64,000 nt of DNA, from NCBI GenBank assembly GCA_028826165.1, contig JAPDFW010000080.1, forward strand, positions 62,001-126,000. Reading direction: 5' to 3'. This DNA comes from Anaeramoeba ignava BMAN. Lineage: Eukaryota > Protista > Anaeramoebae. Position 1 is the first letter of the stretch. Each line of letters opens with the position of its first letter. The notes under the pieces were generated by a model. It saw only the letters and a list, made by a program, of their open reading frames with translations, was not told the origin of the DNA and did no database searches. Below are positions 15,301 to 56,426 of the stretch, piece by piece. Position numbers and translations under genes: made by a program.

Positions 15301-16097
15301 TCTTCCGGATAGTTATCAAGGACGTTATTGATTTCTATCGACCTGATGCAATCGTTATGCAATGCGGGGCTGATTCACTGACCGGAGACAGACTCGGTTG
15401 CTTCAACCTCACGCTGACAGGCCATGGAAATTGTGTCTCCTTTGTCAAAAGCTTTAATCTTCCCCTCCTCGTTCTCGGCGGCGGTGGGTACACTATCAGA
15501 AATGTTGCTAGGTGCTGGACTTATGAAACGTCTCTTCTTGTTGATGCTCAAATTCCTGAGGAACTCCCTTTCCATGACTACTATGATTATTACGGTCCTG
15601 ATTATTCCCTTAATTTGATCCCCACAAATATGAAGAACTACAATACCCTCGAGGATTTGGATAATATCCTTAGAGAGATCAGAGAAAATCTCCGTAATCT
15701 CCAACCCTCTCCTGGTGTCCAGAATATCGTCACACCTTCAAATTTATTCTCAGAACAAAATTCTCATCTTGATCTTGAATTGCAAAATTCTGATAAAAGA
15801 ATTCGCAAAAAAATTGATAATTCTTTTGTTGTTAAAAATGATGAAAATGAAGAGGATCTTGAAATTGATGATGGAAATTTCTCCCAAAATAATCATTTGA
15901 AAAATGATATCAATTTTTCTGAAAGTTTTCATAAAATGGAAGAAGAATTTGAGAAAAGTGAAGTTATTAATGAAGAAAAAGAGATGAAAACAGAAGCAAA
16001 AGATTTAGAAAATTCGCAAGATTCACAAGATTCTCAAGATTCTCAAGATTCAAAAGATTCAAAAGATTTGCAAGATTCAAAAGATCAAGTAAAATAA
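12384..16097 (+). CDS. HDAC: Class I histone deacetylase (Rpd3/HDAC1-3 family), 2 exons (12384-12533, 14745-16097), ~500 aa
   Basis: [15 protein letters not shown]; [10 protein letters not shown]; SGFCYIND; [15 protein letters not shown]; QCGADSL; [15 protein letters not shown]; phase-0 GT-AG intron 12534-14744. Confidence 0.96.
12610..14725. repeat. 12-bp satellite (ataaaattattt/ataaaattaaat)n filling the 2.2-kb HDAC intron
   Basis: Directly visible; source of the spurious IKLF ORFs. Confidence 0.95.
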
Positions 16098-36512: not shown

Positions 36513-36901
36513 TAATTCACAAAAAAAAAATGAAAAAAAAAAAATGAAAAAAAAAATGAAAAAAAAAATGAAAAAAAAAAATTTTTGAGAAGTCGAAATT
36601 ATATTGAGGAATAATTTTATCTTTATCTTTAAAAACAAAATAAATCAAATTAAATTAAATCCAAAAATAAAATAATCAAAAATAAAAAAAAAAATTAAAG
36701 AGATCAAAAATAATCAATAAAAAAAAAAAATAAGAATTTTGTTTTTTTTCATTTTTCTCTTTGAGAATTTTTCTTGTAATTATTTTTAACAAGAAGAAAC
36801 CAAAACTCAAAAAAAATTTTTTTTGATTACAACTTTTAATTTATTTTAATCTTTGATTTAATTAAAAAAAATCAAAATCAAAATAGGGGTACAAAATCAA
36901 A

Positions 36902-38992
36902 ATGAACTTTTTCTTTCTTTTTTTTGTTTCTTTTGCTTGTTTCTTTGTTTTGCTAGCTCAATCCGAAGTTGTTCTTTCAAATTCTTTAACTTTCATACCT
37001 GGAGAAACAAATGTTATGGGCACTTTCCTTGATGAAGATGAAGGATTCATTTATTTTCTTGATGAAAGGAATTATAAATACAGCTATATTTGGAAATATG
37101 ATTTGAATACTCTTGAATTTTTGAATTATACTCATATTGAAGAAGATTATGTTAACTGTGGAGCGATTGATTTTAAAAATAAATTTCTTTATTTAGCAAC
37201 AAGTAATTCTCATAAATTTTTGAAGTTTAATTTAACATCATTCCAAGTTGTTGATAATGCAACATTAAATGTTTCATCTGGTAGTCAAGCAATAAGAGTT
37301 GAAATTGATATAATAAATCAAAAAGCTTATGTTGGATTCACAGCCCCAATTACTATTGTGAAATTTGATTTGGTGAAATGGGGTGAAAGCTCGTCTTTAC
37401 CTCTTTCAGGTGATAGATTATCAGGATCTATAATTGATATTGATAATGGGATACTTTATGTGGCAATAGATTCATATAGTGGAAATAATGCAACAATTTA
37501 CAAAATTGATTTATCAACTTTCACTCTAGTTGATTCTCTTAAAGTGAATTTACCAGGTGCTAAATTTTTAAATTTTGGAGTGATTGATAGTCCAACTCAA
37601 ATGATGTACTTTGGTATTGATCAAACTCCAATGAGAATTGCCAAAATCGATATAAAAAATTTCACATCAGTTGGAGTATTGAATTTACTGTCACAATCAT
37701 ATTGCTATGGAGCAGGAATTGATACATTCAATAGAATTGGCTATTTCTTAGCTGGAAATGGATACCTCATGAAATTGAATTTGACCGATTTCTCATTAAT
37801 TGATTCACTTCATTTTAGTAACTATTGGGTGGGCGCAATGGCTATTGATTTCAGTGCTAAAAATGCATATATTGAATCAGGAAATTCTCAGTTTGTTCGA
37901 GTGAATTTAACATCACTTACAGAAGTTAACAAGACTGGTCTTATTGTTTATACAGATCCTGTATTCATTTTGATTGATGAACAAAATCAAACAGCATATG
38001 TTTGCTTTAATGATCATGGAGGATTAATTGCTAAAGTTGATCTTCAATCATTTTCACTGATTGATTATTTGATTCTTGGGTTAAGTGATGATATATATCA
38101 GGGAGAAATTGATACTAAAAATGGATTCATTTATCTTTTCTTTTTCGATAATTTAACAATTTCTAAAGTATTATTATCAAATTTCTCATTAAGTGAAACT
38201 GTGTCATTGGATTCAGGTAGCTATACTATCTTAACTTCCTTTGATCAAGAAAATCAAATCCTTTATTTGTTATACGCCAATTCTAGTAATTATTATTACT
38301 TACTCAAAATTAGTTGTCCTGATTTGGAAATTACAGATTCCTTACCTTTACAAGAAAACATATTTGCTTATGGTTTGTATCCAGATCCTTGGCACGGATT
38401 TATTTATTGTTGGATTATTGAGTATTATGGACCTGGTTCAGGATATTTCCTGTATAAAGTTCAATTATCCACTTTCAGTAAAGTTGGCCAAGTTAATTTG
38501 ACAGAGTATGGAGTTGCTCATCCAGTTTTTGATAAAACCCATCAACTCATCTATTTTGGAGATTTTTCGGAATCGATTTATCGAGTTGATTTGATTAATA
38601 TGGATGTGATGAATGGTTATTTAGACATAAGATGGGCTGATTTTGTTTCATCTTTTATTGAATCAACTGATTCTTGGGTATTTTTTGTTGTGAATTATTA
38701 CAATTCAGCTTCTGGTGATTTTGATATTCCAGTAATACTTCAAATTGATTCATCTTCAAATCAATTAATTTCAAACACAACATTCGATCTAGTGTCTTCG
38801 AGCATAATTGATATGTATGATCCAACAACTAACTATGCCTATGCAATAATTCCTAACTCCGTGCCTTTTATTCTTTATCAACTTTCATTTCCAACACCGC
38901 CTCCAACTCCAACACCATCTCCTTCTTCAAGTCAACAAATTCTTTTTTCATTTTTGATTTTTGGAATAATGATGATTTTGGGATTATTTTAA
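36902..38992 (+). CDS. Array copy 1: secreted, probably GPI-anchored double beta-propeller surface protein (696 aa)
   Basis: N-terminal signal peptide; 14 ~45-aa repeats of the form D..N..LY...I.K.DL..F; Pro/Thr stalk; C-terminal SSSQQILFSFLIFGIMMILGLF with no cytoplasmic tail. Confidence 0.85.
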   Translation: MNFFFLFFVSFACFFVLLAQSEVVLSNSLTFIPGETNVMGTFLDEDEGFIYFLDERNYKYSYIWKYDLNTLEFLNYTHIEEDYVNCGAIDFKNKFLYLATSNSHKFLKFNLTSFQVVDNATLNVSSGSQAIRVEIDIINQKAYVGFTAPITIVKFDLVKWGESSSLPLSGDRLSGSIIDIDNGILYVAIDSYSGNNATIYKIDLSTFTLVDSLKVNLPGAKFLNFGVIDSPTQMMYFGIDQTPMRIAKIDIKNFTSVGVLNLLSQSYCYGAGIDTFNRIGYFLAGNGYLMKLNLTDFSLIDSLHFSNYWVGAMAIDFSAKNAYIESGNSQFVRVNLTSLTEVNKTGLIVYTDPVFILIDEQNQTAYVCFNDHGGLIAKVDLQSFSLIDYLILGLSDDIYQGEIDTKNGFIYLFFFDNLTISKVLLSNFSLSETVSLDSGSYTILTSFDQENQILYLLYANSSNYYYLLKISCPDLEITDSLPLQENIFAYGLYPDPWHGFIYCWIIEYYGPGSGYFLYKVQLSTFSKVGQVNLTEYGVAHPVFDKTHQLIYFGDFSESIYRVDLINMDVMNGYLDIRWADFVSSFIESTDSWVFFVVNYYNSASGDFDIPVILQIDSSSNQLISNTTFDLVSSSIIDMYDPTTNYAYAIIPNSVPFILYQLSFPTPPPTPTPSPSSSQQILFSFLIFGIMMILGLF

Positions 38993-39529
38993 TTAATTCC
39001 AATTCTTTTTTCTTTTTTCAATTTCAATCTTTTTTTCAATTCTTTTTTCAAGAAGAAAAATAAAAAGCAAAATTAATCCAAAATTTAAAATCTTTTATTT
39101 TTTTTTTAATTTAAATAAAAATAAAAATAAAAATAATAGAGAAATAAATTTTTTAATAATAATTATTGTAATTAATTTTTATTTCGAATAAATTGAATAA
39201 ATGAAAAAAAGAAATTAAATTTATAAATAAAAAAATTTTTTAAATTATTTGATCAAAAAGAAAGAAAAAGAAAAAAACAAATTAAAAAAAAATTTTTTTT
39301 TCATTTTCATTTTCTCTTTCTTTTCTTTAATTGTTTTTATTTAAAACAATTCCAAAAAAAAAAAACAAATTAAAAACAACAAAAACACAATTTCTCACTC
39401 TCTTTTCCTTTTTTTTTAATTAATTTCAATTTTAAAGTAAATTTTTGATAGATTCAATTTAATTTTATAAAATCCAAAATTTATTTTTCTTTTTATTTTA
39501 AATAAAAAAAAAAAACTAGAAATTAAAAA

Positions 39530-41629
39530 ATGAACTTTGTTTTGCTTTTCTTCATTTCAATTACTTGTTTCTTTTTCTTGGTTCAATCTCAATTCAATGA
39601 AACAAATTCTCTAAATTTCACAAAAGGAATGAAAACTATAGCTTCAAGTTTTCTTGATGAAGATGAAGGATTCCTTTATTTTCTTGATGAAAGAGACAAG
39701 AATGGATTAATGTATCTTTGGAAATATGATATGTATACTCTTGATATTTTGAATTACACTGATATTGGCATTACTTATGCTAGATACGGAGCTATTGATA
39801 CTGTAAACAAACTTCTTTATGTTGCAACCCATTATGGCTATCAATTTGTGAAAATTGATTTGAATACAATGCAAATTATTGATCAAATCGCCCTAAACGA
39901 CGCAATCAATAATTATGGAGTCAAAGTAGAAATTGATCTTGTGAATCAAAAAGCCTATGTTGGATACCAAACTCCAATGATTGTTAAGGTTGATTTGGCA
40001 TCATTTGCTCAAGAGTCATCTTTAACTCTTTCAAATTTCATGTTGATAGGATCTGTGATTGATGTTGATAATGGGATATTGTATGCCTCAACAGATACAA
40101 TTTCTGGAAACAATGCAACAATTTACAAAATTGATTTATCAACCTTCACAGAAGTTGATTCTCTTTTAGTAAATTTATCAGGTGTGGGAAAATTGAAATG
40201 TGGAGTGATTGATAACACAAATCAAATGATGTATTTTGGAACTTATCAATGGCCAATGAACATTGTGAAAATAAATTTAACAGATTTCACATCAGTTGGA
40301 TCAGTAGGCACTTCAGACGGAGGAGATTGTTATGGAGCAGGAATTGATGTTACAAATGGATTAGGATATTTCTTAAATATATATGGATACCTTTACAAAT
40401 TGGATTTAGCCACTTTCACAATAGCAGATGTACTTGATTTGAATGTATCTATGTCTTATACAATGGTGATTGATTCATCGGTTGAAAATTCTTACATTGG
40501 ATTGGAATACGCTGGAGTTTATCAAGTAAGTTTACCCTCACTTACAGTAGCAAACAGGAGTAATTCGATTGTTTATACAAAACCTGAATTCATTTTGATT
40601 GATGAACCAAATCAAATTGGATATGCTTTCTTTTCTAATTCTGGAGGAATACTTGCAAAAGTTGATTTTGAATCCTTCACACTTGTGGGCTATTTGATGA
40701 TGGGAGTGTATGGCTCTGATATATATCAGGGAGCAATTGATACCACAAATGGATTCATTTATCTTTTCTTTGATACTGGAAATTTATCAATTATTAAAAT
40801 CAGATTATCAAATTTCAGCCTCGATGGGAATGTAGCTGCGGATCCAGATCTCTCTGGAGATTATATCACTTTTGAGCAATCAAAGCAGATTTTTTATTTC
40901 GAGTATTCTAATAAGACAGATCATTATCAATACTTGGCCAAAATAAGTTCTCCTGATTTCCAAATTATTGCCTCTTTGCTTTTGACAGATATGAATGTTT
41001 ACACAATGGATTTTGATTTTTTGCATGGATTCCTTTATCTTTTCTACTATAATTATAGCGCAAGTGGATCAAAAAAATTTATTTCTAAAATTCAAGCATC
41101 GACCCTTAGCATAGTTGGACAAGCTGATTTAACCCAATATAAGTTCGAATATCCAGTTCTTGATCAAACTCATCAACTTATCTATTTTGGACATGGGGAT
41201 GAGTATAGTTATTTATTGATCTGCAGAGTAAATTTGGTTAATATGCAAGTTATGAATGATTGCATGAACATGTCTCTGAGTCATTTCTATGCATCCTTTA
41301 TTACATCCTCAGATTCTTGGCTATTCTTGGTTGTGGATTATTTAAATTCAACTTCTTCTCAATACGAAGGAGTATTACTTCAAATCGAAGCAAGTTCAAA
41401 TCAATTAATTTCAAACAAAACAATTAATTGTGATCTATTTAGAAGTTATGTCTATTCTCATGATTCACAGACAAATTATGGGTATCTTTTAGATTATTAT
41501 ACATCCGAAACTACTTTTTATCAATTTTCATTTCCACCTGCAATTCCAACACCACCTTCTTCAAGTCAACAAATTCTTTTCTCATTTTTAATTTTTGGGA
41601 TAATGATTTTGATTTTGGGATTATTTTAA
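39530..41629 (+). CDS. Array copy 2: double beta-propeller surface protein (699 aa)
   Basis: Paralogous to copy 1 over its full length; same termini. Confidence 0.85.
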   Translation: MNFVLLFFISITCFFFLVQSQFNETNSLNFTKGMKTIASSFLDEDEGFLYFLDERDKNGLMYLWKYDMYTLDILNYTDIGITYARYGAIDTVNKLLYVATHYGYQFVKIDLNTMQIIDQIALNDAINNYGVKVEIDLVNQKAYVGYQTPMIVKVDLASFAQESSLTLSNFMLIGSVIDVDNGILYASTDTISGNNATIYKIDLSTFTEVDSLLVNLSGVGKLKCGVIDNTNQMMYFGTYQWPMNIVKINLTDFTSVGSVGTSDGGDCYGAGIDVTNGLGYFLNIYGYLYKLDLATFTIADVLDLNVSMSYTMVIDSSVENSYIGLEYAGVYQVSLPSLTVANRSNSIVYTKPEFILIDEPNQIGYAFFSNSGGILAKVDFESFTLVGYLMMGVYGSDIYQGAIDTTNGFIYLFFDTGNLSIIKIRLSNFSLDGNVAADPDLSGDYITFEQSKQIFYFEYSNKTDHYQYLAKISSPDFQIIASLLLTDMNVYTMDFDFLHGFLYLFYYNYSASGSKKFISKIQASTLSIVGQADLTQYKFEYPVLDQTHQLIYFGHGDEYSYLLICRVNLVNMQVMNDCMNMSLSHFYASFITSSDSWLFLVVDYLNSTSSQYEGVLLQIEASSNQLISNKTINCDLFRSYVYSHDSQTNYGYLLDYYTSETTFYQFSFPPAIPTPPSSSQQILFSFLIFGIMILILGLF

Positions 41630-42141
41630 TTAATTCCATTTCTTTTTTCTTTTTTCAATTTCAATTCTTTTTTTCAAGAAGAAAAATAAAAAGCAAAATT
41701 AATCCAAAATTTAAAATCTTTTCTTTTTTTTTTTAATTTAAATAAAAATAAATAATAGAGAAATAAATTTTTTAATAATTATTGTTATTAATTTCTATTT
41801 CAAATAAATTGAATAAATGAAAAAAAGAAATTAAATTTATAAATAAAAAAATTTTTTAAATTATTTGATCAAAAAGAAAGAAAAAGAAAAAAAACAAATT
41901 AAAAAAAAATTTTTTTTCATTTTCATTTTCTCTTTCTTTTCTTTAATTGTTTTTATTTAAAACAATTCCAAAAAAAAAAACAAATTAAAAACAACAAAAA
42001 CACAATTTCTCACTCTCTTTTCCTTTTTTTTAATTAATTTCAATTTAAAGTAAATTTTTGATAGATTCAATTTAATTTTATAAAATCCAAAATTTATTTT
42101 TCTTTTTATTTTAAATAAAAAAAAAAACTAGAAATTAAAAA

Positions 42142-44244
42142 ATGAACTTTGTTTTGCTTTTCTTCATTTCATTTACTTGTTTCTTTTTCTTGGTTCAATC
42201 TCAAGTCACTCTTTTAAATTCTTTCGATTTCCCATTTGTTATGGATAATTCTCAATTAGGTTTTCTTGACGAAGATGAAGGATTCCTTTATTTTCTTGAT
42301 AGAAGAGATGGTGGTATGCTGAGCTATCTTTGGAAATATGATATGTATACTTTTGAATTTCTAGATTATTTGAATATTGGAATCGGAAGTGGAATGAAAG
42401 TTTGCGGAGCTATTGATACTGTAAACAAACTTCTTTATGTTGCAACTTATTATGTTAACAATATCTTTGTCAAAATTGATTTGAATACAATGCAAGTTGT
42501 TGATAATATAACATTTAGTGATTTATCGGCTAATGAACCCAAAAAAGTAGAAATTGATCTTGTGAATCAAAAAGCCTATGTTGGATACCAAAATCCGATC
42601 TATGTTGTTAAGGTTGATTTGGCTTCATTTACTGAAGAATCAAATTTAACTCTTTCAAACTACATGTTGATAGGATCTGTGATTGATGTTGATAATGGGA
42701 TATTGTATGTCTCAACAGATTCAAATTCTGGAAACAATGCAACAATTTACAAAATTGATTTATCAACCTTCACAGAAGTTGATTCTCTTTTAGTAAGTTT
42801 ATCAGGTGTGGCATATTTGAGATGTGGAGTGATTGATAGTACAAATCAAATGATGTATTTTGGAACTAATCAAAATCCAATGAAAATTGTGAAAACCAAT
42901 TTAACGGATTTCACATCAGTTGGATCAGTGACAGTATCAGGGGATCAATATTGTGCAGCAGCAGGAATTGATATATTGAATAAAATTGGTTATTTTATAT
43001 CTGAAAATGGATATCTTGTATATTTGAATTTAACAACTTTCACAATCACCAATTCATTTTATTTCAATGGTACTCACACTTATACAATGGTGATTGATTC
43101 ATATGCCGAAAATGCTTACATTCCAACAGAAGATTCTCAAATTTTTCAAATAAGTTTGCCTGAACTTACAGAAGGAAAAAAAAGAGATTTTCTTGATTAT
43201 TCAAATCCAGAACTCATTTTGATTGATGAAACAAATCAAATCGGTTATGTTTATTTTGATAACTATGGAGGAATAATTGCTAAAGTTGATCTTCAATCAT
43301 TTTCACTTGTTGACCATTTAAATCTTGGATTAAGTGATGATATATATCAGGGAGAAATTGATCTTACAAATGGATTCATTTATCTTTTCCCTGATACTGA
43401 AAATTTAACAATTACCAAAATTAGATTATCAAATTTCTCAGTTGATGAAACTGTCCAATTATATTCAGGTGGATCTGTAGATGCAACTTCTTTTGATCAA
43501 CAAAATCAAATTCTTTATGTTGGACTTTACAATTCTTCTGATTCAAAAGATTATTTAATCAAAATTAGCTGTCCTGATTTACAAATTATTGATTCTTTGG
43601 AATTTCCATCTTTGGTGACAATTACTAACTTATATCTTGATTCTGCGCATGAATATCTTTATATTTGGGTTTATGATGATAGTGCAGTTGGCTCATGCTA
43701 TTTTCTTGATAAAATACAATTATCCAATTTAACTCAGGTTGGTTCAGTTAATTTAACTCAATATGATTTTACTGATCCACTTCTTGATCAAACTCATCAA
43801 CTTTTTTTTTATGGAGATCAAAATACCTTTTCCATTTTCAGAGTAGATTTGATTAGCATGGAAGTTATCAATGATTCTTTGAATATTTCAGAATGGAATT
43901 CTTTTCAATCATCTTTTATTGAATCAAGTGATACTTGGGTGTATTTTGTTGTCGCTTATGAGGATCCTTACACTGATGAATATGAAAAAGGGGGAATCCT
44001 CCAAATTGAAGCAAGTTCAAACGAATTAATTTCAAACACAACATTTAATATTTTATCCACTAGTTTTATGCAAATTTATGATACAACAACAAATTATGGA
44101 TATCTTTTAGATTGTTCTTCGACGCCCATTATGCTTTATCAACTTTCATTCCCAAGTGTAACTCCTCCACCTTCTTCAAGTCAACAAATTCTTTTTTCAT
44201 TTTTGATTTTTGGAATAATGATTTTGATTTTGGGATTATTTTAA
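42142..44244 (+). CDS. Array copy 3: double beta-propeller surface protein (700 aa)
   Basis: Same architecture as the other copies. Confidence 0.85.
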   Translation: MNFVLLFFISFTCFFFLVQSQVTLLNSFDFPFVMDNSQLGFLDEDEGFLYFLDRRDGGMLSYLWKYDMYTFEFLDYLNIGIGSGMKVCGAIDTVNKLLYVATYYVNNIFVKIDLNTMQVVDNITFSDLSANEPKKVEIDLVNQKAYVGYQNPIYVVKVDLASFTEESNLTLSNYMLIGSVIDVDNGILYVSTDSNSGNNATIYKIDLSTFTEVDSLLVSLSGVAYLRCGVIDSTNQMMYFGTNQNPMKIVKTNLTDFTSVGSVTVSGDQYCAAAGIDILNKIGYFISENGYLVYLNLTTFTITNSFYFNGTHTYTMVIDSYAENAYIPTEDSQIFQISLPELTEGKKRDFLDYSNPELILIDETNQIGYVYFDNYGGIIAKVDLQSFSLVDHLNLGLSDDIYQGEIDLTNGFIYLFPDTENLTITKIRLSNFSVDETVQLYSGGSVDATSFDQQNQILYVGLYNSSDSKDYLIKISCPDLQIIDSLEFPSLVTITNLYLDSAHEYLYIWVYDDSAVGSCYFLDKIQLSNLTQVGSVNLTQYDFTDPLLDQTHQLFFYGDQNTFSIFRVDLISMEVINDSLNISEWNSFQSSFIESSDTWVYFVVAYEDPYTDEYEKGGILQIEASSNELISNTTFNILSTSFMQIYDTTTNYGYLLDCSSTPIMLYQLSFPSVTPPPSSSQQILFSFLIFGIMILILGLF

Positions 44245-44824
44245 TTTTAATTAATTCCTTTTTTCAATTCTTTTTTTCAAGAAGAAAAATAAAAAGCAAA
44301 ATTAAAAATATTTTTTTATTTTTAATTTAAATAAATTTTTTAATTTATATTTTGATCCTTATTAAATTTTTGTTTCAAATCATTCAAAAACCTTAAAGAT
44401 CATTTGAAATTAGAAAGGGGTATGTTTTTTAATTAAATAAGAAAGAACAAAAAAATTTTTTTGAATTGTTTATCAATAAAAATGATCAAATAAAAAAAAA
44501 AAACTTAAACAATCCAAATAAAAGAACTCAAATTGCTTCTTGAAATGGAAACGAGATTTTACTTTGAATTTTCTATTAAAGTTTTGATTTGTTTTTTTTT
44601 TTTGAAATTAAAAAAAAAAAGATTTTATAATTGAAGAAGGGGTATTTTTTTTAATTAAAAAAAAAGGAGAATAAAAGAAAAAAAAAAAGCAAATTGTTCT
44701 TTCATTTTTTTTCTTTCTTCTTTCTTTATTCACTTAATTCATTGTAAGTTAATTTAAACCCCTTTTTTTGTTTTTTTTTTATTATTATTTCCAATTTTTC
44801 TTCAAAAAAAAAATAGAAATACAA

Positions 44825-46918
44825 ATGAACTTTGGTTTGCTTTTCTTTCTTTCCTTTGCTTGCTTCTTTTTGCTGATTCAAACTCAATTTAATGAAACAA
44901 ATTCTTTGAATTTACCACTTGGAATCGATTGGGTTACTTCTAGTTTTCTTGATGAAGATGCTGGATTTCTTTATTTTCTTGATCAAAGAAACACTGATGA
45001 AACGTATCTTTGGAAATATGATATGAATACTCTTGATATTTTGAACTATACTGAAATTGGGGTTGATTGTTATGGTGAATATGGAGCGATTGATACTGTA
45101 AACAAGCTTCTTTATGTTGCAAAATATTACTCTGGATCTCAATTTTTCAAAATTGATTTGAATACAATGCAAGTTGTTGATAATATAACCTTAACTGTTC
45201 CATCTGGTAATCATGCTGTAAGAGTTGAAATTGATGTTGTTAATCAAAAAGCCTATGTTGGATATCAAAATCCGATCTATGTTGTTAAAGTTGATTTGGC
45301 ATCATTTACTGAAGGATCAAATTTAACTCTTTCAAACGACAAGATGACAGGATCTGTGATTGATGTTGATAATGGGATATTGTATGTCTCAACAGATTCA
45401 AATTCTGGAAACAATGCAACAATTTACAAAATTGATTTATCAACCTTCACACAAGTTGATTCTCTTTTAGTAAGTTTATCAGGTGTGGCATATTTAAAAT
45501 GTGGAGTGATTGATAGCACAAATCAAATGATGTATTTTGGAACTAATCAATGGCCAACGAAAATTGTCAAAATCAATTCAGCAGATTTCACATCAGTTGG
45601 ATCAGTGACAACAACACTTGGAGGAGATTGTTATGGAGCAGGAATTGATGAAACAAATGGATTTGCTTATTTCTTAAATTCCTATTATATTTACAAATTG
45701 ACTTTGGCGAGCTTTACAGTTACAGGATCGGTTGACTTCGATTCTTTTTGGCTGGACTCAATGGTTCTTGATTCATCTGCTGGAAATGCTTACATCACAT
45801 CAGGACTAGCTCAAGTAATTCAAGTCAATTTACCATCACTTACTGAAGGGAACAAGAGTAATTCGATTGTTTATACAGATCCAGAATTTATTTTCATTGA
45901 TGAACCAAACCAAATTGCTTATATTTACTTTGAGAATCTTGGAGGAATAATTTCCAAAATTGATCTTCAATCATTTTCACTTGTTGATTATTTGATTATT
46001 GAGTTGAATGAATCTATGGATTATGGAGAAATTGATACTACAAATGGATTCATTTATCTTTTCCCTTATCACGAAGATTTAGATATCATTAAAATCAGAT
46101 TATCAAATTTCACTTTTGATGGAATTGTAACCGTGGCTACAGATACATCTATCTACGGCACTTCTTTTGATTCCCAAAATCAAGTCCTTTATGTTGAAAT
46201 ATATAACGATACGGAATCAGAATACTATTTAGCCAAAATTACTTGTCCTGATTTACAAATTATTGATTCTTTACTTTTGGATAATTTAAATGTTTATAAG
46301 ATGCACCTTGATTCTTCACATGGATATCTTTATATCTTGCTCAAGAATAATTCTGCTAGTAGTTCCAAATATTTTATCTTTCAATACCAAACATCTCCTT
46401 TAAATCAAATAGGCTCAGTAGATTTAACTCAATATTATGTATCCAAATCAGTTCTTGATAAAACTCACCAATTCATTTATTTTGGAGATTATGATTATGA
46501 TGTCTATTATTATTTCATTTATCGAGTGGATTTGGTTACTATGCAAGTTATGAGTGGTTCTTTATATACAGAATCTGAAGATCTATATGGGTCTTTTATG
46601 TCCCCAAATGATGATTGGGTGTATTTCGTTGTTGATTATTACAATTCAGATACTGATGAATATGAAGGAGCAATACTCCAAATTGAAGCAAGTTCAAATC
46701 AATTAATTTCAAACACAACATTTGATTCTGAATTCCTTTATGGTTATCTCTATGCTTCAGATCAATCAAAAAATTATGGATATCTTTTAGATTATTATTC
46801 AACACCAGTTACCCTTTATCAATTACCATTTGGAGATTTACCACCTTCTTCAAGTCAACAAATTCTTTTTTCATTTTTGATTTTTGGAATAATGATTTTG
46901 ATTTTGGGATTATTTTAA
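44825..46918 (+). CDS. Array copy 4: double beta-propeller surface protein (~697 aa, start MNFGLLFF)
   Basis: Same architecture; start moved to the ATG homologous to the other copies. Confidence 0.85.
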   Translation: MNFGLLFFLSFACFFLLIQTQFNETNSLNLPLGIDWVTSSFLDEDAGFLYFLDQRNTDETYLWKYDMNTLDILNYTEIGVDCYGEYGAIDTVNKLLYVAKYYSGSQFFKIDLNTMQVVDNITLTVPSGNHAVRVEIDVVNQKAYVGYQNPIYVVKVDLASFTEGSNLTLSNDKMTGSVIDVDNGILYVSTDSNSGNNATIYKIDLSTFTQVDSLLVSLSGVAYLKCGVIDSTNQMMYFGTNQWPTKIVKINSADFTSVGSVTTTLGGDCYGAGIDETNGFAYFLNSYYIYKLTLASFTVTGSVDFDSFWLDSMVLDSSAGNAYITSGLAQVIQVNLPSLTEGNKSNSIVYTDPEFIFIDEPNQIAYIYFENLGGIISKIDLQSFSLVDYLIIELNESMDYGEIDTTNGFIYLFPYHEDLDIIKIRLSNFTFDGIVTVATDTSIYGTSFDSQNQVLYVEIYNDTESEYYLAKITCPDLQIIDSLLLDNLNVYKMHLDSSHGYLYILLKNNSASSSKYFIFQYQTSPLNQIGSVDLTQYYVSKSVLDKTHQFIYFGDYDYDVYYYFIYRVDLVTMQVMSGSLYTESEDLYGSFMSPNDDWVYFVVDYYNSDTDEYEGAILQIEASSNQLISNTTFDSEFLYGYLYASDQSKNYGYLLDYYSTPVTLYQLPFGDLPPSSSQQILFSFLIFGIMILILGLF

Positions 46919-46967
46919 TTTTAATTCCTTTTTTCAATTTCTTTTTTCAAGAAGATAATAAACACCA

Positions 46968-48752
46968 AATTCAACATTCAATATTCAATTCAATATTCAA
47001 CATTCAATATTCAATTCAATATTCAATATTCAATATTTAATATTTAATATTCAATATTTAATATTTAATATTTAATATTCAATTCAATATTTAATATTTA
47101 ATATTTAATATTTAATATTTAATATTCAATTTAATATTTAATATTTAATTCAATATTTAATATTCAATATTCAATATTTAATATTCAATTCAATTCAATA
47201 TTTAATATCCAATTCAATATTTAATATTCAATTCAATATTTAATATCCAATTCAATATTTAATATTCAATTCAATTCAATATTCAATATTCAATATTTAA
47301 TATTTAATATTTAATATTCAATATTCAATTTAATTCAATATTTAATATTCAATTCAATATTTAATATTTAATATCCAATATTTAATAATTTAATATTTAA
47401 TATTTAATATTTAATATTTAATATTTAATATTTAATATTCAATTTAATTCAATATTTAATATTCAATATTCAATATTTAATATTTAATTCAATTCAATAT
47501 TTAATATCCAATTCAATATTTAATATTCAATTCAATATTTAATATCCAATTCAATATTTAATATTCAATTCAATTCAATATTCAATATTCAATATTTAAT
47601 ATTTAATATTTTAATATTCAATTTAATTCAATATTTAATATTCAATTCAATATTCAATATTTAATATTCAATTCAATATTCAATTCAATATTCAATTCAA
47701 TTCAATATTTAATATCCAATTCAATATTCAATATTCAATATTTAATATTCAATTCAATATTTAATATTCAATTCAATTCAATTTAATTCAATATTCAATT
47801 CAATATTTAATATTCAATATTCAATTCAATTCAATTCAATATTTAATTCAATTCAATTCAATATTTAATATTTAATATTTAATATTTAATTCAATATTTA
47901 ATTTAATATTTAATATTCAATTCAATTCAATTCAATTCAATATTCAATTCAATATTTAATATCCAATTCAATATTTAATTCAATATTCAATATTCAATTC
48001 AATTCAATTCAATTCAATATTTAATATTCAATTCAATATTTAATATCCAATTCAATATTCAATATTTAATTCAATATTTAATATTCAATTCAATTCAATA
48101 TTCAATATTTAATATTCAATTCAATTCAATATTCAATATTTAATATTCAATTCAATATTTAATATTCAATTCAATATTCAATATTTAATTCAATATTTAA
48201 TATTCAATTCAATATTTAATATTCAATATTTAATATCCAATTCAATATTTAATATTCAATTCAATATTTAATATTCAATTCAATATTTAATATCCAATAT
48301 TTAATATTCAATTCAATTCAATCCAATTCAATCCAATTTAAATTCAATATTTAATATTCAATATTTAATATCCAATTCAATATTTAATATTCAATATTCA
48401 ATATTCAATATTCAATTCAATATTTAATATCCAATTCAATTCAATATTCAATATTTAATATTTAATTCAATATTTAATATTCAATTCAATTCAATTCAAT
48501 ATTTAATATTCAATTCAATATTTAATATTCAATATTTAATATTCAATTCAATATTTAATATTTAATTCAATATTTAATATTCAATATTCAATTCAATATT
48601 TAATATTCAATATTTAATATTCAATTCAATATTCAATATTCAATATTCAATTCAATATTTAATTCAATATTTAATTCAATATTTAATATTTAATTCAATA
48701 TTCAATTCAATTCAATTCAATATTTAATATTCAATTCAATATTTAATATTTA
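46968..48752. repeat. 1.8-kb satellite of mixed 7-bp (aatattt/aatattc) and 5-bp (aattc) units between array copies 4 and 5
   Basis: Directly visible; essentially no G on the + strand. Confidence 0.95.
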
Positions 48753-49422
48753 GTTTAATTACAAAAAGAAAGGAACAAAAAATTTTTTTTTTCCAGTTCT
48801 TTTCTTGTTTTCTTTTTTAAAAAAGGGGTTAATTTTTAATTATAAATTTAAATTAAAATTATTTAAAAACAGGACTATTTGTTTGTTTGATTCTTTTTGT
48901 GGAATTTCTAATTTTTAATTTTGAAATCAATTTATTTTATTTTTGATTTATTTGATCAGTAAATAAAAATTGGCGATTCGAAATGAATTGATTTAAAATT
49001 AAATTAAAATTATTTAAAAAAAGAATTTGTTGAAAGAAAAGCGATCAAATTGTTTCTTTTTTTTTTTTAAATTAAAATAAAAAGGGGGTTTTTTTTAACT
49101 TAATCTTATTTAAAATAAATTGAGAATAAATAGAAAACTAATTAAATTTAATTTGTTGTAAATTAAATTTAAATTAAATTGAACTTGAAAAAAAATTTTT
49201 TTTTCTATTGATCAAAAAAAAAATGAGAATAAAAGAAAATGAAACTAGCAAAAAAAATTATTTTTTTCATTCATTTCAACTTGTTTTTTTTTTTAAAAAA
49301 CAATAACTGATTTACTTGTTCTTCTTTACTAATTCTATTCAATGTAACTTAATTAATTTTGTTGTTTTTATTTTTTGTTCACTAATTGTGTATTTTAAAT
49401 CAAAAAAAAATAGAGAATAAAA

Positions 49423-51504
49423 ATGAACACTGTTTTGCTTTTCTTGGTTTCAATAAGTTGTTTCTTTTTGATGGTTCAATCCGAATTCAATTTCGCGAGT
49501 TCATTAAATTTACCAACAGGGATTTCGAATGGTTATCAAACTCACCTTGATGAAGATGCTGGATTTGTTTATTTTATTGATGCAAAAGAAAATGGAGACA
49601 CTTTTCTTTTCAAATATGACATAGACACTCTTGATTATTTGGATTATAGTAAGATTGAGATTGAGGGTTGCGTCATTGGAGCGATTGATACTGTAAACAA
49701 AGTTATTTATGTTATGACTTATTTTGGAAGTCAGTTGTCGAAAATTGATTTGAATACAATGCAAATTGTTGCCAATCTAACCTTAAGTGCTCCCTTTTAC
49801 AATAGCCCACAAAGAATGGAAATTGATGTTGTTAATCAAAAGGTTTATGTTGGATATAATAACCCAAGCTCTGTTTACAAAGTTGATTTGGCTTCATTTA
49901 CTGAAGAAGCATTTCTATCTCTTTCAAACGACAAGGTGACAGGATCTGTGATTGATGTTGATAATGGGATATTGTATGCTGCAACAGATTCAAATTATGG
50001 AAACAATGCAACAATTTACAAAATTGATTTATCAACTTTCACACAAGTTGATTCTCTTTTAGTAGGTTTCTCAGGTGTGGCATATTTAAAATGTGGAGTG
50101 ATTGATAACACAAATCAAATGATGTATTTTGGAACTAATCAAAATCCAATGAATATTGTGAAAATCAATTTGGCAGATTTCACACCAATTGAAGTAAGTG
50201 CAACAGCGCAAAGCGATTGTCGATCAGCAGGAATTGATGAAACAAACGGATTTGCTTATTTCTTAACTGGAAGAAATATTTCAAAATTGGATTTAACAAT
50301 TTTCGCAATAACAGATTATCTTTATTTCGAGCATGACTACTTTTATTCAATGGCTCTTGATTCATCTGCTCAAAATGCTTACATGGTATCTTCAAGTTCT
50401 AATGTTTATCAACTAAATTTGCCAGCACTTACAGAAGGAAACAAGAGTGATTCTATTCTTTATACCTCGGTAGAATTTATGTTGATTGATGAAACAAATC
50501 AAATTGGATATATTTACTTTGATAACTATGGAGGAATAATTGTGAAAATCGATCTTCAATCATTTTCACTTGTTGATCATTTTATTATTGGTTTGTCTCT
50601 ATACATTTATGATGGAGAAATTGATAACATTAATGGATTCATGTATCTCTTCCTAGATAATAATAGTAATTTTGTAATTATGAAAATCAATTTAGCAGAT
50701 TTCTCAATTAATGAAACTGTCCAAATAGCCTCAGGTATAGAAGCTTACGAATTTGCTTTTGATTCCCAAACTCAAATTCTTTATGTTGAGTATTATAATG
50801 ACACTTATGGCATCGACTATTTAATGAAAATTAGTTGTCCTGATTTACAAATTATTGATTCTGTGGATTTCGGACAAATGGGTGTTTATGGTGTATATTT
50901 TGATATTTCACGTGGATACTCTTATATTTGGTACGAAGATTTCAGTGCAATTGGTTCAGAATATTTTGTTTATAAAGTACAATTATCAAATCTCGGTATA
51001 ATTGCCCAAGTTGATTTAACAGATTATGATATTGATGAATGTCTTCTTGATAAAACTGATCAACTCCTTTATATTTTGTATCATGATGTTGATTATTACT
51101 ACTTCCTTCGCAGTATTGATTTGGTTAATATGCAAGTTATGAATAATCCATTAAACACAACTTATGAAGACTATTACACATTTTTAATTGAACCAAATGA
51201 TGCCTTATTATTTCTTGTTATGGAATATTACAACGAAACTTCTTATGAATATGAAGGAAAATTACTTCAAATTGAAGCAAGTTCAAATCAATTAATTTCA
51301 GACACACTCATTGATTATGATTTGTTTGTCTATTACGAGTATGGTTCAGACCCATCAAAAAATTATGGATATCTATTAGATTATCATACAACACCAATTA
51401 CTTTTTATCAAATTTCATTTACAACACCACCTCCTTCTTCAAGTCAACAAATTCTTTTTTCATTTTTGATTTTTGGAATAATGATGATTTTGGGATTATT
51501 TTAA
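49423..51504 (+). CDS. Array copy 5: double beta-propeller surface protein (693 aa)
   Basis: Same architecture as the other copies. Confidence 0.85.
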   Translation: MNTVLLFLVSISCFFLMVQSEFNFASSLNLPTGISNGYQTHLDEDAGFVYFIDAKENGDTFLFKYDIDTLDYLDYSKIEIEGCVIGAIDTVNKVIYVMTYFGSQLSKIDLNTMQIVANLTLSAPFYNSPQRMEIDVVNQKVYVGYNNPSSVYKVDLASFTEEAFLSLSNDKVTGSVIDVDNGILYAATDSNYGNNATIYKIDLSTFTQVDSLLVGFSGVAYLKCGVIDNTNQMMYFGTNQNPMNIVKINLADFTPIEVSATAQSDCRSAGIDETNGFAYFLTGRNISKLDLTIFAITDYLYFEHDYFYSMALDSSAQNAYMVSSSSNVYQLNLPALTEGNKSDSILYTSVEFMLIDETNQIGYIYFDNYGGIIVKIDLQSFSLVDHFIIGLSLYIYDGEIDNINGFMYLFLDNNSNFVIMKINLADFSINETVQIASGIEAYEFAFDSQTQILYVEYYNDTYGIDYLMKISCPDLQIIDSVDFGQMGVYGVYFDISRGYSYIWYEDFSAIGSEYFVYKVQLSNLGIIAQVDLTDYDIDECLLDKTDQLLYILYHDVDYYYFLRSIDLVNMQVMNNPLNTTYEDYYTFLIEPNDALLFLVMEYYNETSYEYEGKLLQIEASSNQLISDTLIDYDLFVYYEYGSDPSKNYGYLLDYHTTPITFYQISFTTPPPSSSQQILFSFLIFGIMMILGLF

Positions 51505-51805
51505 TTTTAATTCCTTTTCTCAATTTCTTTTTTCAATTCTTTTTTTCAAGAAGAAAAATAAAAAACAAATTTAATCCAAATTTAAAATCTTTTCTTTTTT
51601 TTATTTAAATTAAAAAGATTAAAAAAATTGTTTTTCATTTTTTTCATTTTTTTTTAAAAACAAAACCTCGATTAATTAAATTGCTTCTTTCTAATTCAAA
51701 TTTAAAGTAATTCAAATCAAATAAAATTTGAATCCCCCTTTTTTATTTTGATTATTAATTTTGTTGCTTTTTTTTTTCAATCAAAAAAAACAAATAGATA
51801 AAACA

Positions 51806-53884
51806 ATGAACTCTTTTGTGCTGTTCTTGATTTCAATCAGTTGTTTCTTTTTGATGGTTAAATCTGAATTCAATCTAAAAAGTTCATTAAATTTACCACT
51901 AGGGATTGACTATGCTCAGCAAACCTATCTTGATGAAGATGAAGGATACATTTATTTTGTTGATAAAAGACGAAATAACGACTATTTTCTTTGGAAATAT
52001 GATATGTATACCCTTGATTACTTGGATTATAGTAAAATAATTGATAATTTCGAAACTGGAGCGATTGATACTGTAAACAAGCTTCTCTATGTTGTACCGA
52101 GTTCTGGATCTCAAGTCGCCAAAATTGATTTGAATACAATGCAAGTTGTTGATAGCATAACATTAAGTGTTCCATCCTACAGTAATTCTAAAAAAGTGGA
52201 AATTGATACTCTTAACCAAAAAGCCTATGTTGGATATCGAGATCCAATTTGTATTGTTAAAGTGGATTTGGCATCATTTACTGAAGAATCAAATTTAACT
52301 CTTTCAAACGACAAGGTGACAGGATCTGTGATTGATGTTGACAATGGGATATTGTATGCTGCAACAGATTCAACTTTTGGAGGCAATGCAATAATTTATA
52401 AAATTGCATTATCAACTTTCACTCAAGTTGATTCTCTTTTAGTAAATTTATCAGGTGTATCATATTTGAGATATGGAGTGATCGATAATTCAACTCAAAT
52501 GATGTATTTTGGAACTAATCAATATCCAATGAATATTGTGAAAATCAATTTAACAGATCTCACATCAGTTGGATCAATAAATCCATCACTGCAACCATCT
52601 TGCCTAGGAACAGGGATTGATGTTCCAAATGGATTTGCTTATTTCTTATCTGAATATTATCTTTCTAAATTGGATTTAACAACTTTCACAATAGCAGATT
52701 CATATAATTTACAGAACGATTACTTTACTTCAATGGCTATTGATTCATCTGCTCAAAATGCTTACATAGCAACTAGTGAACATGAAATTTATCAAGTGAA
52801 TTTACCAGCACTTACGAATGGAAGCAAGAGTAATGATATGATTTATATTTTTGCACAATTAATTTTGGTTGATGAAACGAATCAAATTGCTTATATTTAC
52901 TTTGATAGCTATGGAGGAGTAATTGTTAAAATTAATCTTCAATCATTTTCATTTGTTGATTATTTGATTATTGGGTTGTCTCTAGATATATATGATGGAG
53001 AAATTGATAACACTAATGGATTCATTTATCTCTTCCCAGATAATGGGAATTTGGTAATTATGAAAATCAGATTATCAGATTTCTCAATTAATGAAACTGT
53101 TCAAGTAGCTTCAAGTGGATCTGTTTCATATACTTATTTTGATAAACAAAATCAACTTCTTTATGTTGTATTTCATAATAGCAGCGATAATACGCGTAAT
53201 TTGATGGAAATTAGTTGTCCTGATCTCCAAATTATTGATTCTTTGGATTTCGGAAATGTAGATGTTTCTAGGGCATTTTTTGATATTTCACGTGAATACT
53301 CTTATATTTGGTACTACAATTTTAGTGCAGTTGGTTCAAGATATTTTGTTTATAAAGTGGAATTATCAAATCTCTCTATAATCGACCAAATTGATTTAAC
53401 AGGTTATGATATTGATGAATGTATTCTTGATAAAACTGATCAACTCCTTTATATTTTGTATTATAATATTGATTACTACTTCCTTCGCAGTATTGATTTG
53501 GTTAATATGCAAGTTATGAATAATACATTAAACACAACTTATAATTACTATTTTATATTTTTAATTGAACCAAATGATGCCTTATTATTTCTTGATATGG
53601 GCTATTACAATGAATCTTCTGATGAATATGAAGGGGTGGTATTACTTCAAATTGAAGCAAGTTCAAATGAATTAATTTCAAATACATCATTTGATCATGA
53701 TTTGTTTGACTATTACGAGTATGGTTCAGACCCATCAACAAATTATGGATATCTTTTAGATTTTTCTTCAAACCCAGTTACTTTTTATCAAATTTCATTT
53801 ACAAGTCCACCTTCTTCAAGTCAACAAATTCTTTTTTCATTTTTGATTTTCGGAATAATGATTTTGATTTTGGGGTTATTTTAA
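51806..53884 (+). CDS. Array copy 6: double beta-propeller surface protein (~692 aa, start MNSFVLFL)
   Basis: Same architecture; homologous ATG chosen. Confidence 0.85.
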   Translation: MNSFVLFLISISCFFLMVKSEFNLKSSLNLPLGIDYAQQTYLDEDEGYIYFVDKRRNNDYFLWKYDMYTLDYLDYSKIIDNFETGAIDTVNKLLYVVPSSGSQVAKIDLNTMQVVDSITLSVPSYSNSKKVEIDTLNQKAYVGYRDPICIVKVDLASFTEESNLTLSNDKVTGSVIDVDNGILYAATDSTFGGNAIIYKIALSTFTQVDSLLVNLSGVSYLRYGVIDNSTQMMYFGTNQYPMNIVKINLTDLTSVGSINPSLQPSCLGTGIDVPNGFAYFLSEYYLSKLDLTTFTIADSYNLQNDYFTSMAIDSSAQNAYIATSEHEIYQVNLPALTNGSKSNDMIYIFAQLILVDETNQIAYIYFDSYGGVIVKINLQSFSFVDYLIIGLSLDIYDGEIDNTNGFIYLFPDNGNLVIMKIRLSDFSINETVQVASSGSVSYTYFDKQNQLLYVVFHNSSDNTRNLMEISCPDLQIIDSLDFGNVDVSRAFFDISREYSYIWYYNFSAVGSRYFVYKVELSNLSIIDQIDLTGYDIDECILDKTDQLLYILYYNIDYYFLRSIDLVNMQVMNNTLNTTYNYYFIFLIEPNDALLFLDMGYYNESSDEYEGVVLLQIEASSNELISNTSFDHDLFDYYEYGSDPSTNYGYLLDFSSNPVTFYQISFTSPPSSSQQILFSFLIFGIMILILGLF

Positions 53885-54347
53885 TTTTAATTCCTTTTCT
53901 TTTTTTCAATTTCTTTTTTTCAATTTCTTTTTTTCAATTTCTTTTTTTCAAGAAGAAAAATAAAAAATAATTAAAAATAGTTTTATTTTTTTTTTAATTT
54001 TATTTACTAAATTTGGAGTTTTGTTTTCAATCCAACTTTTAATTTATAGTTTGATCCTTATTAAATTAAAAAGAAAATAAATCCAAAAAATAATTAAAAT
54101 TAATTTAAAAAAAATTTTTTTTTTGTTTTGTTAATTAAAAATAATTAAAAGAAAAAAACTTTCAAAAAAAACCTTTCAAAAAAATTTTTTTTTTTTCATT
54201 TTTCTTTTTTAAAAAAGAAGTTTACTTTATTCAATCCAATTCAATCCAAGTAATTAATTTAATGCAATCCAAGTAATTAATTCAATTCAATTTTAAATTA
54301 ATTTTTGCTTTTTCTTTTTTCTTTTAAAAAAAAATAGAAATTAAAAA

Positions 54348-56426
54348 ATGAACATTGCTTTGCTTTTCTTCATTTCAATTACTTGTTTCTTTTTCTTGGT
54401 TCAATCCCAAGTTTCTATATCAAATTCTTTAAATTTTCCAATTGGAATAGATTCTAGTTATGCAAGTTTTCTTGATGAAGATGAAGGATTTCTTTATTTT
54501 CTTGATCAAAGGAGCACTGATGAAACGTATCTTTGGAAATATGATATGAATACTCTTGATATTTTGAACTATACTGATATTGGCATTAGTAATGGCAGAT
54601 ATGGAGCGATTGATACTGTAAACAAACTTCTTTATGTTGGATCTTATCCTGGAGCTCAGTTTTTCAAAATTGATTTGAATACAATGCAAGTTGTTGATAA
54701 TATAACATTAAGTGTTTCATCTTACAGTAATGCTATAAAAGTGGAAATTGATACTCTTAATCAAAAAGCCTATGTTGGATATCAAACTCCAATTTGTATT
54801 GTTAAAGTGGATTTGGCATCATTTACTGAAGAATCAAATTTAACTCTTTCAAACGACTTTATGACAGGATCTGTGATTGATGTTGATAATGGGATATTGT
54901 ATGCTGCAACAGACTCAAATCCTGTAAACGATGCAACAATTCACAAAATTGATTTATCAACTTTCGCTCAAGTTGATTCTCTTTTAGTCAATTTAACAGG
55001 CATGGCAAGATTAAATTATGGAGTGATCGATAATTCAACTCAAATGATGTATTTTGGAACTTATCAAAATCCCATTAATATCGTTAAAATCAATTTGGCA
55101 GATCTCACATCAGTTGGATCAAAAACTATATATGGCCAAAGATATTGTTATGGAGCAGGAATTGATGAAACAAATGGATTGGCTTATTTCTTATCTGAAA
55201 ATGGAAATATTAATAAATTGAGTTTGGCAACTTTCACAATAACAGAATCAAAAAATTTCAATACCACTTCGGGAGATTCAATGGTTCTTGATTCATCTGC
55301 TGAAAATGCTTACATCACATCAGATCTAGCTCAAGTTGTTCACGTAAATCTACCAGCACTCACAGAAGCAAATAGGAGTGATTCAATAGTTTATACTGAA
55401 GCCCGAGTCATTTCTATTGATTCAACAAATAAGATTGCTTATATTTACTTTAAGAATCTTGGAGGAATAATTGCTAAAATTGATCTTCAATCATTTTCAC
55501 TTATTGATTATTTGATTATTGGATTGTATGAAAATATCCAATTTGGAGAGCTTGATCTTACAAATGGATTCATGTATCTTTTCCCACAAAATGATGATAT
55601 AACAATTATCAAAATCAGATTATCAAATTTCTCATTTGAAGAATTTGTAACTGTTGTTTCGGATTTATATGTGAGAGAAACTTCTTTTGATCAACAGAAT
55701 CAAATCATTTATATCTTATCACAAGATTTCTCAAATGGTGACTACTATTTACACAGAATTAGTTCTCCTGATTTACAAATTATTGATTCTTTACTTTTGT
55801 CCGATATAAATGTTTATGGTGTGTATGTTGATTCTCCGCATGGATATCTTTATTTGTTGATTTATGATTATGCTGAAGTAGGTTCCAAGTATTTTATCTA
55901 TAAAATCGAATTAACAAATCTCTCTATAATTGACGAAGTTAATTTAACACAATATAATATTCGTGCTCCAGTTCTTGATAAAACTCATCAATTCATATAT
56001 TTTGGTGATTACAATGATTACTACTTGATTTGCCGACTTAATTTGGCTAATATGCAAGTTATGAACGACTGCTGGAACACAAGTTTTGATAATTTATATG
56101 ACTCTTTTATGATATCAAATGATGCTTGGGTATATTTTTATTTTGATTATTGCAATCCATCTTCTGGTGGATATGAAATAGCATTACTTCAAATTGAAGC
56201 AAGTTCAAATCAATTAATTTCAAGCACAGTATTTAACCAAGATTTATTTGAAAGTTATCTTTATGCTTCCGATCCATCAACAAATTATGGATATCTTTTA
56301 GATTATTATTCAACACCAGTTACCCTTTATCAATTTTCATTTACAAGTCCACCTTCTTCAAGTCAACAAATTCTTTTTTCATTTTTGATTTTCGGAATGA
56401 TGATTTTGATTTTGGGATTATTTTAA
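54348..56426 (+). CDS. Array copy 7: double beta-propeller surface protein (692 aa)
   Basis: Same architecture as the other copies. Confidence 0.85.
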   Translation: MNIALLFFISITCFFFLVQSQVSISNSLNFPIGIDSSYASFLDEDEGFLYFLDQRSTDETYLWKYDMNTLDILNYTDIGISNGRYGAIDTVNKLLYVGSYPGAQFFKIDLNTMQVVDNITLSVSSYSNAIKVEIDTLNQKAYVGYQTPICIVKVDLASFTEESNLTLSNDFMTGSVIDVDNGILYAATDSNPVNDATIHKIDLSTFAQVDSLLVNLTGMARLNYGVIDNSTQMMYFGTYQNPINIVKINLADLTSVGSKTIYGQRYCYGAGIDETNGLAYFLSENGNINKLSLATFTITESKNFNTTSGDSMVLDSSAENAYITSDLAQVVHVNLPALTEANRSDSIVYTEARVISIDSTNKIAYIYFKNLGGIIAKIDLQSFSLIDYLIIGLYENIQFGELDLTNGFMYLFPQNDDITIIKIRLSNFSFEEFVTVVSDLYVRETSFDQQNQIIYILSQDFSNGDYYLHRISSPDLQIIDSLLLSDINVYGVYVDSPHGYLYLLIYDYAEVGSKYFIYKIELTNLSIIDEVNLTQYNIRAPVLDKTHQFIYFGDYNDYYLICRLNLANMQVMNDCWNTSFDNLYDSFMISNDAWVYFYFDYCNPSSGGYEIALLQIEASSNQLISSTVFNQDLFESYLYASDPSTNYGYLLDYYSTPVTLYQFSFTSPPSSSQQILFSFLIFGMMILILGLF

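Follow-up and report, generated by a model that had tools for sequence, protein, structure and literature searches.

This report concerns a 64-kb window (the whole stretch of DNA analysed, part of one contig) from Anaeramoeba ignava, an anaerobic protist that carries symbionts, in which seven open reading frames (ORFs) lie head to tail on the forward strand. Each encodes a protein of 692-700 amino acids that is predicted to carry a pair of seven-bladed beta-propellers between a signal peptide and a glycosylphosphatidylinositol (GPI)-type tail, and the copies, which share 47-69% identity with one another, differ mainly on one face of the fold. We incline to the view that they are surface binding proteins. 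An initial annotation, made from the letters of the DNA alone, had described seven tandem intron-free genes, and this is confirmed by the ORF coordinates, by the absence of stops and introns, and by the seven proteins deposited at NCBI with exactly these sequences. The standard genetic code already leaves the ORFs open, and a ciliate code is unnecessary.

Gene 1 (36902..38992, 696 amino acids), with its signal peptide, 14 blades and GPI-type tail, is the most divergent copy (47-56% identity to the other six) and has the longest Pro/Thr stalk. It is followed by gene 2 (39530..41629, 699 amino acids), gene 3 (42142..44244, 700 amino acids) and gene 4 (44825..46918, 697 amino acids), the last being the copy used for structure modelling. 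Beyond a 2.5-kb spacer (46919..49422), which is mainly low-complexity A+T repeat (ATTCA/AATATTC-like) and in which no family fragment was found, lie gene 5 (49423..51504, 693 amino acids) and its sister gene 6 (51806..53884, 692 amino acids; 69% identity), and finally gene 7 (54348..56426, 692 amino acids), whose nearest copy is gene 4 (67%). A 3' flank motif, consisting of a T-rich stretch and then CAAGAAGA, is repeated after genes 1-6 (the first instance on the forward strand of the spacer at 38993..39529), and the final 160 nucleotides (nt) upstream of genes 2 and 3 are almost identical; the flanks have therefore been duplicated or converted together with the genes. The loop sequences and the tail quoted in the initial annotation are present as written, and its two DNA motifs occur in six of the seven genes (about zero expected by chance), gene 1 being the exception.

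Each protein begins with a hydrophobic N-terminus and ends, after a stalk of few residues, with SSS at 22-23 residues from the C-terminus and a final stretch of 17 residues with a mean hydropathy of 2.7-2.9, leaving no cytoplasmic part. Small residues followed by a terminal hydrophobic stretch form the pattern of a GPI signal, and both this signal and the signal peptide were called from sequence pattern. The genome holds GPI transamidase genes above cut-off (Gpi16, Gaa1 and Peptidase_C13, the last a Gpi8-type gene not separated from legumain). The GPI-type tail proposed earlier is thus consistent with both its own pattern and the host's gene content, and the array proteins are putatively GPI-attached and probably displayed at the cell surface. 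The Pro-rich stalk proposed with it is clear in gene 1; in the other copies it amounts to just a few residues and is indistinct. The proteins carry 9-15 N-glycosylation sequons each.

Fold and blade framework

AlphaFold2, run on an alignment of the seven sequences with gene 4 as the modelled protein, returned a model with a predicted local distance difference test score (pLDDT) of 81 and a predicted template modelling score (pTM) of 0.72. Its DSSP string reads as 14 four-stranded blades, with the N-terminal strand apparently closing blade 14; propeller 1 spans approximately residues 32-344, and propeller 2 approximately 353-668 plus strand 27-30. The top Foldseek matches of this model are tandem 7+7 propellers throughout, at 8-12% identity. 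Residues 32-336 superpose on the single seven-bladed propeller of Escherichia coli YncE (3VGZ) with a Z score of 34.3 and a root-mean-square deviation of 2.2 over 292 residues, and propeller 1 matches the Methanosarcina surface-layer YVTN-PKD protein 1L0Q (Z 30.0); identity to these YncE/YVTN structures is 13-14%. Insofar as a model can bear them out, both the double propeller of 2x7 blades and its YncE/YVTN-like character stand as first proposed.

Pfam, NCBIfam and PDB sequence searches with the array proteins reached no family at cut-off: NCBIfam NF052280 scored about 19 bits against a cut-off of 400, and the YVTN/YNCE Pfam models gave no match. The ESM Atlas yielded no family-level match, its structure matches being WD40 double propellers. 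With the tandem WD40 propellers (Aip1, Utp) the array proteins share a 7+7 topology in which an N-terminal strand closes the last blade (template modelling scores of 0.5-0.6), but they lack the GH...WD signature and any WD40 Pfam match, and they have a D, Y, K, L blade motif instead. With the YncE/YVTN proteins they share the seven-bladed fold, and 1L0Q resembles their prokaryotic homologues in the PKD and Ig-like stalks that these carry; unlike YncE/YVTN proteins, however, they fall far under the family cut-offs, form a tandem double propeller and possess their own repeat motif. The initial remark that it was not recognised as a named family holds for Pfam, NCBIfam and PDB sequences, with the reservation that the family has probably been tabulated as "protein NirF."

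The blade motif places framework residues once per blade, with Asp at the end of strand A, Tyr in B, Lys in C and Leu in the CD turn, all on the bottom face (faces were assigned from the DSSP string via standard propeller geometry rather than from coordinates). No conserved polar residue was found on the top face among the family sequences compared, which argues against an active site. This bears on the possibility that the proteins are secreted or anchored enzymes or small-molecule binders akin to NirF, lactonase or similar propeller enzymes. Some members do carry the NCBI name "protein nirf," and language-model neighbours include lactonase and YncE clusters (0.79-0.80, lead level only). NirF is a single eight-bladed heme d1 protein of about 370-390 amino acids; a NirF identity was rejected for the array proteins, which have 14 blades and nearly twice that length, match neither NirF nor cytochrome D1 in Pfam, NCBIfam or PDB sequence searches, and show no conserved polar residues on the top face for a heme site. 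An enzyme family with a conserved active site was looked for and not found, no Pfam or NCBIfam family comes near its cut-off, the conserved residues recur once per blade on the bottom face without forming a top-face site, and the face that bears the active site in propeller enzymes is here the most variable part. We consider the enzyme reading very improbable and already largely refuted, and "NirF" is a misnomer for this family.

Variation on the top face, exchange between copies and possible selection

Among the seven genes, mean pairwise identity is 0.39 in the DA and BC (top) loops and 0.69 in the AB and CD (bottom) loops (p = 4e-7), and the contrast is alike in both propellers. The variation is therefore not spread evenly over the fold, and its assignment to the DA/BC face was correct. 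It does, however, extend beyond loops to the top halves of the strands (mean identity 0.46, against 0.70 for the bottom halves), i.e., to the whole top face, and while the loops do vary, "hypervariable" is too strong a term for top loops whose mean ratio of non-synonymous to synonymous rates (dN/dS, or omega) is 0.6-1.1. Five young pairs elsewhere in the genome show the same asymmetry (342 non-synonymous codons of 1635 on top vs. 117 of 1459 on the bottom). In one pair of members with a fibronectin-type FN3 stalk, the propeller top differs by 71 non-synonymous and 9 synonymous codons and the stalk by 61 and 33. The top faces are rich in Tyr, Ser, Asn, Gly and Asp; Tyr makes up 8.9% of A. ignava top loops, against 0.5% in the bottom loops and 2.9% in the top loops of prokaryotic homologues, and Phe is not raised.

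Copies have also exchanged sequence. The pairwise homoplasy index (PHI) test gave p = 0.001 in two arrays, and the seven genes, which average 70% DNA identity, share stretches of 93-99% in blades 3-4. Identical tracts reach 103 nt (the longest shared by genes 3 and 4 in blade 4), the tails are near-identical in DNA, and the nearest neighbour switches along the gene. Recombination between copies is thus detected from the alignments, and the scaffold DNA described earlier as often identical is so in patches, mainly blades 3-4 and the tail, and not in general.

Such mosaicism invites comparison with systems of antigenic variation or somatic diversification of the VSG (variant surface glycoprotein), VSP (variant-specific surface protein) or VLR (variable lymphocyte receptor) kind, in which one or a few genes would be active per cell and silent or broken copies would serve as donors. 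Lamprey VLRs and trypanosome VSGs combine a GPI anchor, a constant tail, a variable binding face and conversion-type exchange, and the array is like them in each of these respects, its GPI-type tail being almost invariant at the DNA level. In another array (on contig C80), one intact gene is matched best, over much of its length, by a neighbouring truncated copy. Against this, all seven genes are complete germline ORFs with their own flanks; no short cassettes occur within the window, and neither an incomplete germline gene, a cassette array, an expression site nor any other cassette or somatic-assembly system was seen in the array. The broken loci found elsewhere resemble full-length copies that have been damaged, no donor for several divergent tracts was found in the fetched loci, the whole family numbers just 55-60 or so loci, and the host is free-living. 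A switching system of this kind is, in our judgement, highly unlikely.

Whether selection has driven the divergence of the top face is a more delicate matter. We used codon models in our own code rather than PAML, with columns near gaps removed. Standard site models, a test of which the initial annotation had proposed (M8 vs. M7), favour M8 over M8a: for the seven genes, twice the log-likelihood difference (2dL) is 72-89, and omega of 3-7 is assigned to 7-11% of sites. The top face holds 45% of all sites but 19 of the 21 with posterior above 0.9. The signal persists with separate trees per segment. It is nonetheless model-dependent. Multinucleotide changes and synonymous-rate variation are known to produce false positives in such tests (PMC10336034). 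Several results weigh against diversification by selection for binding: for the seven genes, 2dL falls to 15-18 with multinucleotide changes, to 6 with synonymous-rate variation and to 0 with both; for the C80 array it falls from 51 to 3.5 under the added terms; a joint top-face test on 17 sequences gives 2dL of 5.8-7.2 on two degrees of freedom (p about 0.03-0.06); synonymous divergence on the top face exceeds that on the bottom by a factor of 1.4-2; A+T bias favours Tyr codons; and prokaryotic homologues are also more variable on top, so that the pattern is in part a property of the fold. The asymmetry in A. ignava exceeds theirs, with a median top/bottom distance ratio of 2.44 in 11 independent pairs vs. 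1.68 in 35 prokaryotic pairs (p = 0.004). Raw ratios of non-synonymous to synonymous differences (pN/pS) above 1 in young pairs were set aside in favour of maximum-likelihood models, as the bottom face also exceeds 1 in this A+T-rich genome. By partition, dN/dS in bottom loops is 0.25-0.5, and the top loops on average evolve near neutrally. At minimum, constraint on the top face has been relaxed, and positive selection may act on a few percent of sites; on balance we favour diversifying selection on the top face, with modest confidence. Higher synonymous divergence and multi-hit codons on top would likewise be expected if gene conversion evens out the framework and exchanges loops.

Genome-wide family and prokaryotic homologues

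Searches of the A. ignava genome (42.8 Mb, 147 contigs) place the family at about 55-60 loci on 29 contigs, a hand count that is a lower bound and may include a few assembly duplicates, and a large genome-wide family is thereby confirmed. Among 37 long ORFs that were pulled, with split loci kept apart and no spliced models joined, about 26 have a GPI-type tail and a few a transmembrane helix with a short tail; at four loci an FN3 stalk precedes the transmembrane helix. Roughly 20 loci are split or truncated. Other local arrays (86% identical on contig C134, 79-89% on C80) differ in age. Expression evidence for the family consists of one member (P0016), a complete ORF of the A. ignava transcriptome in EukProt; this transcript has no match above 43% in the present assembly, which may therefore lack some copies. 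Practically identical copies occur across contigs (C1:1720358 and C104:842050; C109:181716 and C64:581823), representing either very recent duplications or assembly redundancy, and P0017 appears to join the start of the C64 copy to a C109-like end. The NCBI model P0006 (locus L014) joins a family member to a nucleotidyltransferase gene, from which it takes its name; this is probably a gene-model error. Like diversifying germline recognition families of the MHC (major histocompatibility complex), NLR or BspA type, the family is multi-copy, bears the marks of birth and death, varies on one face and exchanges sequence between copies.

The FN3 stalk is common to more than 90 other loci (38-53% identity), and all six sampled non-family loci that carry it have FG-GAP heads, which belong to a head family unrelated to the double propeller. 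Unrelated heads on the same stalk look as though they had been swapped on a common scaffold, and double-propeller and FG-GAP heads thus look interchangeable, as judged from these sequences. Stalk and helix of the long members (contigs C13, C116, C100, C64 and C109) are shared with these FG-GAP loci, one of which is found on the same contig as the window, some 30 kb to its left.

A profile search with the family returned 1,282 clusters. The named matches outside A. ignava are bacterial and archaeal (Bathyarchaeia, Acidobacteria, Patescibacteria, Sumerlaeia, Schekmanbacteria and others; donor lineages are known solely from such database names), mostly large secreted or surface proteins with Ig-like, PKD, BACON or peptidase domains. 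The whole 14-blade module, with the same per-blade Asp, is present in 139 fetched sequences (some near-identical); it is a common component of proteins secreted by uncultured bacteria and archaea (e.g., P0004, P0018, P0051 and P0192) and has no Pfam or NCBIfam model. A search of GTDB genomes with a divergent member gave no confirmed locus, and neither A. flamelloides nor any other named eukaryote appeared in word-based searches or among nameable profile matches, although this argues only weakly for absence. A FastTree phylogeny groups the A. ignava sequences into two clades, of 34 and 3 sequences, among prokaryotic homologues; composition bias may matter here, and the two clades could reflect one transfer or two. 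One homologue (P0177, metagenome contig L047) has genes for RING, glycoside hydrolase 6, PAP2, Hint-endonuclease and glycosyltransferase proteins around it, and this combination hints at a giant virus.

Among the laterally acquired classes with the most members, Supplementary Data 5C of the genome paper (Jerlstrom-Hultqvist et al., 2024; PMC11550330) includes the PANTHER class "PROTEIN_NIRF," with 15 proteins in A. ignava and none (0 and 0) in A. flamelloides. This class is very probably the double-propeller family, which is about four times larger. Taken together, the prokaryotic homologues, the tabulated class and the NCBI name make it likely that the module was acquired laterally, presumably in the direction from prokaryote to A. 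ignava, and probably already tabulated. In general terms, the same paper proposes a possible part in symbiont interactions for repeat proteins that are secreted, amplified and of lateral origin; no description of this family's fold, anchors, arrays or variation was found in its text or supplements.

The remaining genes of the window are of other kinds. An ankyrin-repeat and BTB gene (56520-58607) starts 94 nt past gene 7; its ORF was considered as an eighth array copy and ruled out as unrelated. On the reverse strand lie a DBF zinc-finger (Dbf4-like) protein with a very long Asn/Gln/Glu repeat (62-4303), a class III aminotransferase (9129-9968) and a CDP-diacylglycerol synthase-type gene (35535-36638), and on the forward strand a histone deacetylase (14772-16097). 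Kilobase-scale low-complexity A+T tracts (12500-14300, 18200-20900, 31000-32900 and 46950-48900), with one strand almost devoid of G, give rise to spurious ORFs.

A putative repertoire of surface binding proteins

The explanation we favour, with some confidence, is a germline, birth-and-death family of surface binding proteins, i.e., an adhesin or receptor repertoire, whose copies probably bind different targets. A prokaryotic 14-blade surface module would have been acquired laterally, equipped with a eukaryotic signal peptide and a GPI signal (other members carry the same head on a transmembrane helix or FN3 stalk), and multiplied by tandem duplication. Each gene would yield an N-glycosylated protein, held in the outer leaflet of either the plasma membrane or the symbiosome membrane, in which the bottom-face Asp-Tyr-Lys/Leu framework would hold the fold and the differing top faces would supply different binding surfaces, with gene conversion evening out framework patches and swapping loops among neighbours. 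The window proteins have no cytoplasmic tail and therefore cannot signal alone; they may instead capture or adhere to bacteria (prey or Desulfobacteraceae symbionts) or act via a partner. Plausible targets would be bacterial surfaces or glycans, and plausible uses capture, adhesion and symbiont retention, although binding role and ligand class are read from sequence and model. The "diversified recognition family" of the initial annotation thus survives in its one-face variation, family size and shared heads, and is weakened by the fold-general asymmetry, the model-dependent selection and the completeness of the germline ORFs.

An alternative is a structural or protective coat, in which glycosylated bulk matters and the top face drifts, or escapes viruses, predatory bacteria or intracellular pathogens, without binding anything. 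Near-neutral top loops, the 40-68% of top sites that fit omega = 1, the many sequons, the split and truncated copies and the missing cytoplasmic tail all speak for it, and escape selection leaves the same sequence pattern as binding diversification. A coat sits less well with an asymmetry above that of the prokaryotic homologues, with a specific Tyr enrichment that suits binding surfaces more than shielding, and with the display of the head on long FN3 stalks that the other propeller head family uses. We regard it as a serious but rather unlikely alternative.

Trans-sialidases have a propeller fold and are of bacterial origin. The Trypanosoma cruzi trans-sialidase-like superfamily numbers more than 1,400 genes with signal peptide and GPI signal, many of them enzymatically inactive and lectin-like, and gene conversion has been proposed (PMC3198458). 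The present family is likewise an expanded protist surface family with these signals and with exchange between copies, but that superfamily consists of a non-homologous six-bladed sialidase with Asp boxes plus lectin domain in a parasite under host immunity, whereas the array proteins have no Pfam match, two seven-bladed propellers, no enzyme ancestry that we could see and a free-living host. In the sister lineage, Trichomonas vaginalis has 911 BspA-like genes built of leucine-rich repeats (LRR), with endocytic motifs in transmembrane members (PMC2843621); these too form a large candidate surface family with a repeat shared with bacteria and diverse anchors, but as an LRR solenoid in a mucosal parasite. 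By analogy, the double-propeller family would work like the trans-sialidase-like or BspA families while belonging to neither, nor to NirF, YncE, WD40, VLR or VSG. Surface families that derive from lateral transfer and have expanded are already known; the papers searched contained no description of such a fold in such a role in a protist that is free-living and has symbionts.

A bolder extension, which we consider doubtful, is that unrelated laterally acquired heads (double propeller, FG-GAP) on shared GPI or FN3-transmembrane scaffolds, with conversion-reshuffled loops under selection, constitute a modular recognition system that tells sulfate-reducing symbionts from prey and pathogens. If true, a free-living protist would choose its symbionts with a receptor repertoire resembling innate immunity. 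The question at stake is how one sulfate-reducing symbiont can be retained by Anaeramoeba, in a compartment that opens to the exterior, when other bacteria are eaten; receptor recognition has been named as a candidate for symbiont retention without any receptor being specified (PMC11550330). The family also marks out a 14-blade module shared with uncultured prokaryotes, and it would indicate that expanded, conversion-shuffled GPI surface families are not limited to parasites. For A. ignava itself, it provides concrete, species-specific receptor candidates with a defined variable face.

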